Shown: positions 1,941 to 63,268 of the stretch, one piece after another
How positions within the stretch are numbered: the stretch's first letter is position 1
Layout of the letters: each line of letters starts with the position of its first letter
Assembly (NCBI RefSeq): GCF_052425735.1
Contig: NC_135764.1
Coordinates: forward strand, 9,796,001-9,860,000
DNA: 64,000 bases
Direction: 5' to 3'
Source: Oculina patagonica
Taxonomy: Eukaryota
The notes under the pieces: generated by a model
The model's input: only the letters and a program-made list of their open reading frames with translations
Told to the model about the DNA's origin: nothing
The model's database searches: none
Made by a program: the position numbers and the translations under genes

Positions 1941-2451
1941 ATGAACAAACTGTTCCTGTTAGCATTGGTTGGCTTTGTGCTGGCTTTAGGTTTGGCACTT
2001 CCTCTTTATGAGAATGGAGATCAAACGAATAATGACCTCAAATCAGAAGACGCTGCGAGGTGTGGTAAAAAACGTTTTCTATAAAAGACAACGATGTGGC
2101 GTGCTTTAACAGTTGCTTTACATTGTTCCAATCACACGAGCAAAATTGTTGCTGATTCGTTTTTTTTAGAATAAGTCAAACAACGCTTGTGCATTCGCAG
2201 GCAGTTTGTGTTAAATACTTATACATGTTATTGCCATTTTTTTTCGCAGGGACTTGAACTGGGATGCTGCAGATAAGGAAGATTACGATGATGATGATGA
2301 CTATGATAATGGCGAAGAAGACGAAGATGACGACAATTCTTTTTCAAATCCAATAGAGAAGTCATCAGATCGCCAAATTGTACGGCGCTTATTTCGAGTC
2401 CGTCGCTTCTTCCGCGGCACTCGTAGATTCTTCCGCCGCTTCCGTGGCTAA
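1941..2451 (+). CDS. Type A secreted cationic prepropeptide A1 (putative antimicrobial peptide precursor), 106 aa; exons 1941-2059, 2250-2451
   Basis: Signal peptide MNKLFLLALVGFVLALGLA. Phase-2 GT-AG intron (GAG|gtgtgg ... ttttcgcag|G) joins in frame to the acidic pro-region and C-terminal QIVRRLFRVRRFFRGTRRFFRRFR-G-stop. TATAAAA at 1886-1892. Confidence 0.88.
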
Positions 2452-4598
2452 AGAAGCAACACTTACCAGTTCTAGGTATGCACGCCTCAAGTTTTGAGCT
2501 TCCATGTCTTTTCTTTAGTTAAGGCTCTTTTTACTGATAATCTTAAGCCACAGTTTTAACTTGACTTCAGAAATGAGAAGTAAAGATAAGATAAGAAAAA
2601 TCAAAAATGATAAAAAAGGACTAATAGTTACAATAAATAATCATTATAGCTGGAACTTGATTGATTAAACCGACTATGGTTATCTGGGCCTGAAGTTAAA
2701 AAAACGCCTGAAAAAAAAATATCATAATGATTAGCGTGATTATCTTTAACAACTTGTATACAACTAAATTTGATGTGGCTTAGAATTTTGTGATGATGTT
2801 CTGTTGCACTGTATTTTCTTTTTAGTAACGTACCTTAATAAACGCCATGCCAAACTTTTTTTTTTGTTCTGTTCTCTTATTTTGCATTTTTTCGAAAAAC
2901 CGGTATTCAAGTTATTATTGCTCAATAAAATCTTAAAAGAAGGCCTTTTTTGTCCTGCACTTGGTTGTAATTTTATAGTTAATTTATGTTCGAAACAATG
3001 TCCGCTAATATCGAGATGCTAAGCTAAAAAATCGAAACTTACTGCTGAAAGCGGAATTAGTAATATATTTGCTAAATAAATGTATTATTTTCATAAATTC
3101 ATTTGTCCTGTTAAGAAAGCGTACACAGAAAAAAGAAAGAAATGAAATTAATGGCTTCCAAAAGTTGATATCTTCATTGTTCAATCTATACTTTTTTTTT
3201 CTCCACAGACGTACCCTCCATGAACAAAACTGAAAAAAGCCAAGCTCTGTCAATTAACAATACTAACAAGATTTGATAAAGTAAAGTTTGGAAGCTATAG
3301 TAAATAAAAGCGTAAAAATGTACTGATTTTCGTTTTGGATAATAAAAAAAAAAATAAATAAATAAACGTAGATTTTGGTTGTGATAAGTTTAATTTTTTT
3401 TTTTCATATAATTTATATGACTTCCATTTCCATTGTAAAAAACTGACAGAGGGGTATATTTCGTTTAATTTTTGATAAGAATTCAGATGCAGCTGTGGCA
3501 TCAAGCATTTATTAATTGCTTTTCGATGCATATGCAGATGAAAGTATTGGCGGTAAGTGGTCCAAGTAGAGGCAACACCGTCCACCTGTCCTTACAAATT
3601 TCCCTGAGAAGAAAAGTCGAGCATGCATTATAATTGTTATAAAGGAATGGTTTGTAAAGCTTTGCCGCCGGGGTGGGTAGTGGGGGGGGGGGGGGGAGGT
3701 GTCAAGGGGGCTTATTAGAATGCGTTTTTTTTTTTTTTTTTCAAAATATAAAAACAGTTAGGGTGCAGTTGATTTTCTCATGTTTTATTGCTGCCTTTAC
3801 ACATTTTCACACAAAACTCATAAACATTATTTGTGTATAGTTCTAACACATTTTGAAATGTAAAAATAAGATGCTCCGGGTTCATGCAATAGTTGCGGTT
3901 CCACTAGCCATCTTGCCCTCGGGAAAGTACAACTTTACCCAAATGCGAGAGGGGATTGTTTTGTGTGTGACCTCAGCACCCACATTGAAACTACACATGG
4001 AAAATCACCCTTCTCCACTGATCTGCCTACTTTTATGCCTTCTTTTTTTTCGAGAAGGTGGTGGGTGAGAGTGGAGTGTGAACGCCTTTTGTATGAATTT
4101 TACCATCTGGTGCACCCTTACATTGAGAGAACAAATTGTAATTTAGATTCCATTCGCTTTTCCCCGCACAACTCCCCTGAGGAAAGGGGATAGAATGATC
4201 AGACGCAAGAGAAATGACCGTGACTGGGGCTGTGTCACGTAATTGTATTATGTGTGTTTGCGCCCGAGCGAAACGGTTGGCATGATTATCACACACCAGG
4301 TGCTGTTTATAGTGCAGAATCGTTTTACTTATTTAAACGTCGGGTTCGGAGACACTTCTGCCGCTCAGTTGATCATTTCTCGCGGCTGTGCAGGCCAAAA
4401 CACATGTAATTGATCGAGATCCTCTTTTCAGGGTTTACCAATGATTTCATCAAAACGTTTTTGACATAAAGGAAGGATGTGAAGAGTACAAAGGTGTGAA
4501 AATAACGAAGCCGAGAAAAACGAAGGAAAAAGAAAAAAAGGAAAAAAAATGGGAACAATTTCGCAAAAAATCCAAGTTTTGCCTTATACGCATGCACC

Positions 4599-4925
4599 AA
4601 CCCTACGAAATCTTATCCAAAACTCGACAACTGGACGCCGCCATCTTGGAGCTGACGTCAATGAGCTCAGCTTGAAGTTTGGCGGGATAATTTAAATACT
4701 CGAAACTCCTTGTTTCTTCGAAGTGGCTTTTGTTTGACAAAATGCCTGTTTGTGCAGCTCCATTTTGCTCAAACAGAGCTCCAAGATATACAAAAAACAA
4801 GGAGTTTCGACTATTAAAATTTCCCCGTTAAACTTCAGGCTGAGCTCTTTGACGTCACGCATACATTACCAGCTCCAAGATGGCGGCGTTCAGTTGTCGA
4901 GTTTTGGATAAGATTTCGTAGGGTT
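4599..4925. mobile_element. Palindromic MITE nested in a decayed piggyBac-like copy (about 4370-5640)
   Basis: About 55-bp inverted arms AACCCTACGAAATCTTATCCAAAACTCGACAACTG..., plus further internal inverted similarity. Confidence 0.75.
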
Positions 4926-60706: not shown

Positions 60707-60771
<65 letters not shown>

Positions 60772-62322
60772 CTGACTAATGACTTGAAGTGGGGGGAGGG
60801 GGGCTTAAAAGCTTAAAAGACCCTTCTCTCAGTAGTAAACAAGTATAATAAACAAGCTCCGGGTATTTCAATACTATTTAAACCATTCAGGTTATTGGAG
60901 GATTTTTTTTTTTTTTTTGTTTTTGTCTTTATTTTTTCGCTCCTCCCCTCCCCCCCCCCCGGCTCCGCCGTCCCTGAGTCTTAGCTTGCGTTCAATTTCA
61001 GGAATAAGCAAAACCGAACATAAACACGAGGAGATGAAGAGATGAGCTTGATGATAATTTTTTTTTTTCAAATGTGAGAAAACTTTCCACCAACTGACAG
61101 GGTTAGGCTTTTCGATAGAACGATTGTCAATTGAGTGAAAACATAAAACCAACACCCCTTTAAAGTAATCTCTCTGGTCGGTCACAAAGGACGCAAACAG
61201 TAGAGTGAAATAAACAAACCTGAAGCGATTGCATGTAGCTGTTGCGAAGCGCGGAAAAATGAGTGTCAGCTAGTCGTAACATCTGGCACGATTGGTAATG
61301 GCTGTACCTACGATTGGATGGGAGAAAAAGGCACCAGATTTCAAGCCAATCGCTAAGCGTACTAAAAACCAATATAATGAAGACGCGAATTACATTGACA
61401 CGCAAATGATTATCGTTTTATGCATGTAGCTAAACAGTAGCTCAGTGCACGTGGTATTTCTATCTCAATGATGAAAGGGAAACCAGAACAAACCAATTAA
61501 TAGAGAACATTTATTACCAACGGCTTTTTGTTACTGATAGACAAAACTGAAATATGAATTAAATATTCATTTATTCGTTATAAAAAGGCTGATACAAGCT
61601 TATTCATATGCTTTTATATTCTACATGAATCTTTTAATTAACAGCTTAGTTTCGTTAGAGCATTTTGAAAGTTGCGTTCTGTTATTCTTCATCCGTGGAA
61701 TATCCTTGTAAACCTAATGAGACGAAAAAAGTATACATATTTTAAAGCAAAATAAGTCACGCACATACCCTTTGCGTAAGTTTTTCGTATTATCAAAACA
61801 TGTGTTTGCATTACATATTAGAACCGTGTTTACATAGTCCATGCAAAATGACGAGACGACCAATCTAAGCGTCCGTTATCCGATCAAAATTCTATAACAG
61901 ATATTTTAAGCCTATCTTGTTTCCTCTGGCCAGACCTCCTTCTAAAATGGATCGGACATATGCAATGGTTGACATATCAAAATTTCCGCAAATGAAGTTT
62001 AAACAGCTACTAACAATTTCAGCGTTATATAGCAAATCCCCTATTCAAAATTACGAATAAAATCGATAGGTGATTTATGCAATTGAAAACAAAGTGTTAC
62101 ACAATTGGCTCCAATGCACGAGTCTTTGAGGTCGTTTATTTAGTCTAAGTCTTTCTCGTTTTCTTTGTGAGCTTTGGCGTGATTATTTATTGAGAAAAAA
62201 AAATGTAAATGGTCCGAAACGAAATATATTTGTTAAAAAAAAGCATTTAAAAAACGAAGATAAAAAAAATGTTTCCGTTCTCGTTACCTTCAGTTGATTT
62301 GAAGTCCCTCAGTACCGAAGCT

Positions 62323-63268
62323 TCAACCGCGGCTTCGGCGACGACGTCGGAAAAATCTTCGAAATCTTCGTCCACGACGGGATCTTCGGCGTCGGAAGCG
62401 GCGAGCAAGTCGGCGAGCCCCGCGAAATATAAGGAAGGGCAGTATTGGATCAGAAGACTTCTCAACCAATTCTTTGTCCAATGGATCAGACAAAGAGTTT
62501 TCATCCTCGTCATCTGCATCTTCATCGTCATCGTTTTCGGCGTCATCGTGGCCATCGCTATCTATTTCGTCTTCATCCAAATCCTTATCACCATCATCCA
62601 ACTTAGGGTTGCTGATGAAGAATCGAAAACAAAAAAGAAAGAAAGAAATGTAAATGGTTTACACGCCGTTTTAAAACCTTGGCGCTCAACTACATAAAAC
62701 AAAATCACTTGTACTGTTTCACATAATTTTATCTAATTACAACAAAAATACGCGAGTACACTGAATGTTAAAATACAAATGACCAACTAACATTAGAAAA
62801 ATATAGCATGGCAATGTTTCTATGTCGATGATCTTTGAAAGATACATTATTAGTCGTCAGTTGAGATATGAATTAGCACGTTACATTTAAATTGCAAGGG
62901 GAAAGCTAGACTTGCTTTAGTTTGGAATTACAGTAGTCAAACCCCAAAGTTCCCTCTTTTTAATTTCGAAATACTTTTTTTCCGTGTCGATGCTTTGCCT
63001 TAGAACTTGTTTAAAAGAGAATAAAATGATCATATGTGAAGAGCAAAACAAGGGAGACTTTTTTTTAATATACTGTCTTTTTCTTTTCGTTTCTCGACTT
63101 TCGTCTTTCTTCAAGTACAATTGCACTTATTCCTTACCTCTGAAATATGTCGTTTCCAATTTGCTTCAGTTCAGCTTCATAAGCCTCAGCTTCATCGTCA
63201 GTGAATGGCAATGCCAAGCCTATGGCAAACACAAAGCCAACAAGAGCTACAAGAATCAATCCTTTCAT
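62323..63268 (-). CDS. Type B(II) prepropeptide B5, 139 aa; exons 63268-63138, 62611-62323
   Basis: Paralog of B3; exon-2 protein identical to B3; splice sites intact. Confidence 0.88.

Follow-up and report, generated by a model that had tools for sequence, protein, structure and literature searches.

The question raised by this locus, 64,000 nucleotides of the coral Oculina patagonica (NCBI RefSeq assembly GCF_052425735.1, contig NC_135764.1, positions 9,796,001 to 9,860,000 of the forward strand; the window, in what follows, is this whole stretch), is what might be made by a tandem cluster of short genes, each of which encodes a hydrophobic leader, a strongly acidic region and a tail rich in Arg and Phe. 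An initial annotation of the sequence had proposed a new family of amidated antimicrobial peptides, kept inactive by the acidic part. The evidence assembled here supports a family that is real, expressed, ancient and uncharacterised, secreted, probably amidated, Arg-rich, and so far seen in stony corals only. We consider it likely that its members are processed secreted cationic peptides, and they represent a new family on a known plan, that of an acidic mask joined to a cationic peptide.

As to whether the cluster consists of genes at all, the window was searched by tblastn with both exon products of the first copy (A1), and the candidate exons were then spliced. The search yielded eight signal-peptide exons and 11 acidic/Arg-rich second exons or fragments, which resolve into eight intact genes with two coding exons each, three of type A on the plus strand and five of type B on the minus strand, plus three partial copies, the same count as in the initial annotation. 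All eight spliced models are open, encoding 106-139 amino acids, with GT-AG introns of 190-527 bases and a Gly codon followed by the stop. In A1, the ATG is at 1941, GT follows 2059, AG precedes 2250 and the Gly-stop is at 2451, the frame of the second exon running first through an Asp-rich stretch and next through an Arg/Phe stretch; the junctions proposed earlier for A1 and B1 (2059/2250 and 24620/24143) reappear exactly in the spliced models. For positions 58230-63310 of the window, Logan contigs of four RNA-type runs were aligned as well, the RNA status of the runs being a guess of the tool, and contigs, as opposed to reads, showing presence rather than absence. The coding exons are as follows:

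1941-2059, plus strand: A1 coding exon 1, signal peptide and start of the pro-region (tblastn, spliced model; TATAAAA 55 bases before the ATG; NCBI LOC144660752)
2250-2451, plus strand: A1 coding exon 2, acidic region, EKSSDR junction, type A tail and Gly-stop (tblastn, spliced model)
39072-39190, plus strand: A2 coding exon 1 (tblastn, spliced model, TATA box)
39401-39653, plus strand: A2 coding exon 2 (tblastn, spliced model)
58273-58394, plus strand: A3 coding exon 1 (model; RNA-type contig joint 58394/58603; NCBI ACROYT_G024847, 99% identity)
58603-58855, plus strand: A3 coding exon 2 (tblastn, spliced model, RNA-type contig joint)
24620-24750, minus strand: B1 coding exon 1 (model, TATA box; NCBI ACROYT_G024841, 100% over exon 2)
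23864-24143, minus strand: B1 coding exon 2, acidic region, EKSSDP junction, hydrophobic head with poly-Arg tail, and Gly-stop (tblastn, spliced model)
34186-34316, minus strand: B2 coding exon 1 (tblastn, spliced model, TATA box)
33432-33711, minus strand: B2 coding exon 2 (tblastn, spliced model)
46209-46339, minus strand: B3 coding exon 1 (tblastn, spliced model, TATA box)
45393-45681, minus strand: B3 coding exon 2 (tblastn, spliced model)
53487-53617, minus strand: B4 coding exon 1 (tblastn, spliced model, TATA box; NCBI ACROYT_G024844)
52765-53014, minus strand: B4 coding exon 2, acidic region 10 codons shorter (tblastn, spliced model)
63138-63268, minus strand: B5 coding exon 1 (model; joint 62611/63138 in runs X22, two contigs, and X13; NCBI ACROYT_G024846)
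62323-62611, minus strand: B5 coding exon 2 (tblastn, spliced model, RNA-type contig joint)

TATAAAA lies 54-55 bases before the ATG in all eight genes, in a conserved context, CCAAAG(G/A)TATAAAA, that is common to types A and B. As the paralogues are 83-99% identical and their promoters and splice sites are conserved, a chance origin of these models is excluded. The genes are transcribed and spliced as predicted: the joint 58394/58603 (GT..AG) in run X22 is exactly the predicted A3 intron, and the joint 62611/63138 (CT..AC on the plus strand, equal to GT..AG on the minus strand), found in two X22 contigs and one X13 contig, is the predicted B5 intron. Three of the four runs have no depth over the introns, and in the fourth, X13, one low-depth contig spans the A3 intron-exon boundary; contig word depths reach about 1,800, and these values are not to be taken as expression levels. 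Long open reading frames (ORFs) opposite the type B second exons (45339-45806, 52741-53133 and 62269-62697) were rejected as genes, because the splice orientation of the RNA contigs is that of the minus strand, and are a by-product of GAT/GAA-rich sequence. For both types, the contigs add a non-coding 3' exon that the initial annotation had not seen:

59585-59723, plus strand: type A non-coding 3' exon, then poly(A) (joint 58877/59585 in X9 and X12; loose A run behind 59723)
about 61588-61715, minus strand: type B non-coding 3' exon (joint 61711-61715/62286 in X22; contig pieces 61588-61715)

The contigs that carry the type A joint in the 3' untranslated region (UTR) derive from a related organism, and the donor of this intron (58878-58879) is GT in A1 and A2 and CT in A3; for these reasons, A3 itself may not splice its 3' UTR. 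At 59590-59759, the X13 contigs, whose depth over the coding exons is in single digits, reach about 1,000, and loose ends occur on both sides, at 59645 and 59685; a short repeat or other transcript overlaps the type A 3' exon there.

The encoded precursors share one order of parts, and in all eight genes it is the order described initially: a hydrophobic leader, taken for a signal peptide by eye (-3/-1 rule), an acidic pro-region, an EKSSD(R/P) junction, an Arg/Phe tail lacking both Cys and Lys, and a final Gly. The pro-regions contain 25-36 Asp or Glu residues (34 in B1, for which more than 30 had been claimed), and the tails contain 12-21 Arg and 5-6 Phe, with runs of 4-5 Arg in type B. Since these acidic residues outweigh the charge of the tail (+12 to +21), the pro-form, once the leader is discounted, carries a net charge of -6 to -19. 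Every member with a complete first exon begins with a hydrophobic leader.

As to how widely such genes occur, the family is far wider than one cluster, being represented in both major stony-coral lineages, and the cluster itself continues past the window. NCBI already lists the cluster genes (ACROYT_G024841, G024844, G024846, G024847, LOC144660752 and others), under names no more specific than hypothetical or uncharacterized protein, contrary to the expectation that annotation would miss them. Outside the window are a truncated type B gene (G024837), another type B gene (LOC144660746), a gene with a type A leader and a tail starting with Pro (LOC144661169), and two genes of a further type, D (G024830/LOC144660741 and G024831), with tails that consist of a long repeat of the RRVGRK type. 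When 1.84 billion representative proteins were searched with a family profile, 40 matched at E <=0.001, 14 of them at E <=1e-10, a few of the weakest being clear low-complexity noise. The named matches come from Pocillopora meandrina, P. verrucosa, Stylophora pistillata (the Stylophora homologue is PFX17767.1), Acropora palmata, A. cervicornis and A. millepora, and the remaining ones are unnamed second-exon ORFs of metagenome assemblies, one from a Tara sample, that are taken to be coral-derived. No named match outside Scleractinia was found in the profile and word-indexed searches, the sensitivity of which is too low to prove absence. Four of the loci were retrieved, and in each a closely similar leader exon precedes the second exon by about 0.35 to 2.6 kb; in one of them, A-like and B-like genes stand head to head, about 4.5 kb apart, as in B2/A2 and B4/A3. 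The family is multi-copy in at least two genomes, and the genera that share it fall on both sides of the divide between Complexa (Acropora) and Robusta (Oculina, Pocillopora and Stylophora), which would place the origin of the family, and of its A/B split, before these two lineages separated. For two A. millepora members (P0081 and P0083), NCBI gives “histone H3.v1-like” and “YTH domain-containing protein 1-like”; these labels are automatic, driven by low complexity, and wrong. An Acropora branch (P0036, P0054, P0055) has a Pro/Arg-rich tail (PLAFPFVTPIPPRRRGG...) with one Cys, more like the proline-rich peptides (PR-39, apidaecins) than like helices.

The next question is which part of the precursor is maintained. 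Family-wide, the conserved elements are the leader M(K/N)xLxLxAxVxFVL, a motif N-x-L-(S/T)-x-P, and the junction K-S-(S/A)-D-P, with Asp-Pro present in 50 of 54 members. The last residue is Gly in 41 of the 54, and Gly followed by basic residues in eight more (49/54), a conservation good enough to support the earlier reading of this Gly as a probable amidation signal. The stretch from the junction to the Gly is highly variable between types, always Arg-rich and nearly Lys-free. Within type B, a Nei-Gojobori count among the window paralogues (the B1/2/4 group versus the B3/5 group) gives 9-12 synonymous versus 2 non-synonymous differences in the tail (pS 0.26-0.35, pN 0.025, pN/pS about 0.08), and the acidic region has pN/pS of about 0.3-0.8 over all type B pairs, along with indels of 10-17 codons among paralogues. 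The type A tail differs by 0-1 bases per 96 among the three intact genes, the introns of which differ by 6-10% and the first exons by 10-17%, which points to strong constraint, to recent gene conversion, or to a combination of the two. The low pN/pS of the tail and the retention of the junction and the Gly thus point to the tail, plus its release and amidation, as the constrained product, and the acidic region seems to require charge only.

Does a peptide of this kind belong to any family already described? The initial annotation had recognised no relative, and none emerged: Pfam scans of the exon products and of six full-length members gave only sub-threshold low-complexity matches, a PDB sequence profile search gave nothing below E = 0.1, and a full-text search of main articles with identifiers and with junction, tail and leader strings found no relevant paper, so that the profile, Pfam, PDB and full-text searches together yielded no characterised family. 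The best score of an ESM Atlas feature search was 0.75, below the useful level, and its results are leads only. The closest parallels are therefore sought in layout. One example is the arminins of Hydra, which combine a signal peptide, an anionic N-terminal part and a cationic Cys-free C-terminal peptide, and which are multi-copy and limited to one cnidarian lineage, as the coral family is multi-copy and limited to a single lineage of its own. The coral tails differ in being nearly all Arg, in being far more charged and in following a conserved KSSD-P junction. As to homology, all named matches were scleractinian and none came from Hydra in an exhaustive profile search and two word-indexed searches, which included no direct comparison with arminins; of the parallel drawn initially with arminins and damicornin, the arminin layout holds, and sequence kinship to arminins is not detectable. 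The arminin 1a-C peptide is listed as an alpha-helical C-terminal domain (PMC12466427).

Another example is the precursors of anuran skin peptides (dermaseptin/ranid superfamily), encoded in tandem gene clusters, in which the signal is kept, an acidic spacer follows, and the mature peptide, often amidated, varies (PMC13128954). The frog precursors (FSAP_sig_propep) share with the coral family both this layout and a mode of evolution that holds the front constant while the end changes, and one of them is a weak ESM Atlas look-alike (score 0.60), but the frog skin profile PF03032 found no match in the Pfam scans of six full-length members. The frog precursors are cut at Lys-Arg, whereas the coral junction is KSSD-P or KSSD-R; the coral spacer is three times longer, and the coral mature peptide is conserved within each type. 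A third comparison is with damicornin, which has an anionic pro-part and an amidated end. The described coral host-defence peptides damicornin, AmAMP1 and digitiferin are Cys-rich, folded ShK-domain peptides (PMC12496222; PMC12466427, Table 4); in these sources every coral peptide is Cys-rich, and those of stony corals are of the ShK type. They are likewise secreted, with a proposed or shown antibacterial role. By contrast, the family described here is linear, predicted to be amidated, extremely Arg-rich, and expressed; no ShK domain was matched in Pfam even at E up to 1, and none of the eight tails has a Cys, in agreement with the distinction made early on from the six-cysteine damicornin. 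More remote analogies are found in the precursor of eosinophil major basic protein, MBP (proMBP), in which an acidic pro-piece neutralises a toxic Arg-rich polycation, MBP itself being a folded C-type lectin, and in the protamines, which carry Arg runs and are nuclear, without a leader. Charge masking or Arg runs are alike in these, with no sequence relationship in the Pfam and PDB searches, and the coral members, unlike the protamines, carry a hydrophobic secretory leader.

A mechanism can be proposed that uses all parts of the precursor. The leader would be removed after GLA, a position that fits the -3/-1 rule by eye, and the acidic region would neutralise the polycation in transport, keeping it harmless and soluble. 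Release by a protease would follow, at KSSD|P in the conserved form of the junction. Type A has Arg-Gln in place of this Pro and would be cut at KSSD|R or KSSDR|Q, and a cut after Arg would expose an N-terminal Gln able to cyclise. The terminal Gly would be converted to an amide by peptidylglycine alpha-amidating monooxygenase. Once freed, the type A peptide would form an amphipathic Arg/Phe helix, and the type B peptide would present a hydrophobic head and a poly-Arg tail. Indeed, the helical hydrophobic moment is 0.89 for type A, a value reached by 0.9% of shuffles, and 0.86 for type D, reached by 0 of 3,000 shuffles; the type B tail is not amphipathic, its hydrophobic head being followed by poly-Arg. 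Alternation of Arg and Phe has been considered as a theoretical perfectly amphipathic helix (PMC3604073), which the type A tail closely resembles and which was the sole string match in the full-text search. The released polycation (+12 to +21) would bind polyanionic surfaces outside the cell, the most likely target being microbial envelopes in mucus or in the gastric cavity. A very high Arg density may suit seawater salt, and such a charge would be sensible since digitiferin, a known coral peptide, loses its activity at sea salt levels (PMC12496222). The action would be like that of an arminin or a frog skin peptide, with an independent origin.

This fuller reading, of secreted amidated polycationic peptides aimed at microbes, we rate as evenly poised, on the sequence data at hand, and several points weigh against it. 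The tail peptide and its activity are predictions from gene and transcript sequences; the signal peptide was assigned by eye, and the transcripts come from contigs of runs presumed to be RNA. The tail is packed with RR and RxxR sites, at which convertases could cut it into fragments. Within each type the tail is conserved and not diversifying, which is unusual for defence peptides, though the types differ strongly. AlphaFold2 predictions for types A and B with family alignments reached a mean pLDDT of 57-59, with confidence for the leader helix only; the lack of a confidently modelled structure beyond the leader would be expected of peptides that fold only on a surface, yet it provides no positive evidence for them.

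Of the alternatives, signalling survives best, unlikely as we consider it. The products would be amidated and neuropeptide- or hormone-like, such as a short hydrophobic N-terminal peptide that begins with Pro or, in type A, a pGlu...Arg-amide, with the Arg stretch serving mainly as processing sites. Cnidarian neuropeptides are characteristically processed by a cut beside an acidic residue that leaves Pro or Gln at the N-terminus, and by use of a terminal Gly, and the family has the matching sequence features, with its C-terminal Gly or Gly plus basic residues (49/54) and its putative D-P cut beside an acidic residue (50/54). One relative carries PIIPFILM-G-RR, a classical amidation site, and AmAMP1 is also discussed as a possible neuropeptide (PMC12496222). 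However, cnidarian neuropeptide precursors contain repeated copies, each with Gly and basic residues, whereas the coral family has one conserved C-terminal Gly and a single product per precursor, and the position of an internal Gly varies among relatives, so that, as neuropeptide precursors, these would be atypical. Selection keeps the exact Arg/Phe order of the entire tail, and the presence of at least eight near-identical tandem copies, along with large contig depths, suggests bulk secretion.

Next in order, and rather unlikely, is that these are cytolytic peptides of cnidocytes or gland cells, directed at prey, predators or competitors, with the acidic region as a sorting and neutralising pro-part. 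Anionic pro-parts are common in cnidarian toxins, and Arg/Phe amphipathic helices generally lyse membranes; however, a pro-region of 60-78 residues ending in Asp is unlike the typical short, Lys-Arg-terminated pro-part of a cnidarian toxin, Cys is lacking, and no toxin family was matched in Pfam or PDB.

It is improbable, too, that the acidic region is the working part, of a small Asp/Glu-rich calcification protein, with the Arg tail masking it within the molecule or condensing with it as polycation with polyanion. Every named member comes from a coral that builds a skeleton, the weak ESM Atlas look-alikes (<=0.75) include osteopontin, bone sialoprotein and other acidic mineral-binding proteins, and proteins of this composition would presumably evade trypsin-based skeleton proteomics. 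The pattern of constraint argues the other way, the acidic region being loose, with its indels of 10-17 codons, and the tail, the junction and the terminal Gly being constrained, and the restriction to stony corals may just mirror which genomes are annotated. As for the acidic skeletal matrix proteins of corals (SAARP/CARP type), which are recognised by their presence in the skeletal proteome or by calicoblast expression, the full-text search with family motifs and identifiers turned up no relevant paper. Less probable still is a joint role, in which both halves would be functional as a matched polyanion-polycation pair at the calcifying or mucus interface, separating or condensing as a coacervate and so controlling carbonate nucleation or surface chemistry; if true, the family and the coral skeleton would have linked origins. 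Finally, a role within the secretory pathway, in polyanion granule packaging or in inhibition of furin-type convertases, is highly improbable, since, while polyarginines are convertase inhibitors and type B has its runs of 4-5 Arg, no data point there specifically and the amphipathic types A and D fit poorly.

If secreted antimicrobial polycations are indeed what the cluster provides, they would constitute a second, independent arm of coral surface chemistry, and would be candidates for microbiome shaping or for resistance to Vibrio disease in corals, O. patagonica being a classic model for the latter. The predicted products are short enough to be synthesised, and the idea is therefore directly testable. 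The family also illustrates the separate origin, in corals, Hydra, frogs and mammals, of a layout that joins an acidic mask to a cationic peptide.

The remaining family members in the window are the three partial copies:

13935-14211, minus strand: orphan type C second exon, open, with acceptor site, KKSFDP junction, Arg/Phe tail and Gly-stop (tblastn)
26839-26937, plus strand: type A fragment consisting of junction and tail, without acidic region and exon 1
about 29571-29919, minus strand: type B remnant, in which the end of the pro-region (NSLNNPFDKELV) abuts 3' UTR-like sequence, the coding part of the tail being deleted

No first exon for type C was found on the minus strand upstream of 14211 within the window. 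Upstream of this exon and inside the cluster is a retroelement, an ORF of 527 amino acids (18377-19960, plus strand) with a reverse transcriptase domain (RVT_1, E 2.6e-35), which may have split the type C exon from its first exon. Just upstream of the same exon (14540-14900, minus strand), two inverted AT-rich units of about 100 bases (taccaaatggacggaatatatgg...) look like a small foldback element.

At a larger scale, the window contains three tandem copies of a unit of about 19 kb, each with a B, A, B' triplet, one decayed (23.1-29.9 kb) and the others at 32.7-47.1 kb and 52.0-64.0 kb. The copies are not a simple assembly duplication, because they are separated by many substitutions, while the exact copy number of the assembly in such repeats should be treated with care. 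Runs of N are located at 10418-10562, 41649-41914 and 43869-44069, and none overlaps a gene model, a partial copy or a 3' UTR exon. The first is more than 3 kb away from any family member, and ORFs that cross it (10213-11057) were discounted as evidence. The other two fall within about 2.3 kb of extra DNA between A2 and B3, present in the second unit and absent from the third, its sister duplicate, at 60.7-60.95 kb. Between these two gaps, an ORF of 397 amino acids (42150-43343, minus strand) has a weak GIY-YIG match (E 4.7e-4, below the Pfam cut-off), and the region is probably a mobile element insertion, possibly Penelope-like.

Two observations concern neighbouring genes. Between A1 and the type C exon, a fibroblast growth factor gene is probably represented by one exon, an ORF at 12132-12596 (plus strand) whose product has a Pfam FGF match (E 7.8e-10, positions 67-123 of 124). 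Enzymes of the Peptidase_M28/TFR_dimer type trim acidic or C-terminal residues, and in two other coral-type assemblies a gene of this type adjoins a family member (L002 16008-17291, minus strand, and the P0016 contig), at a distance of a few kb in one and of about 1.5 kb in the other, suggesting that it may be a conserved neighbour.

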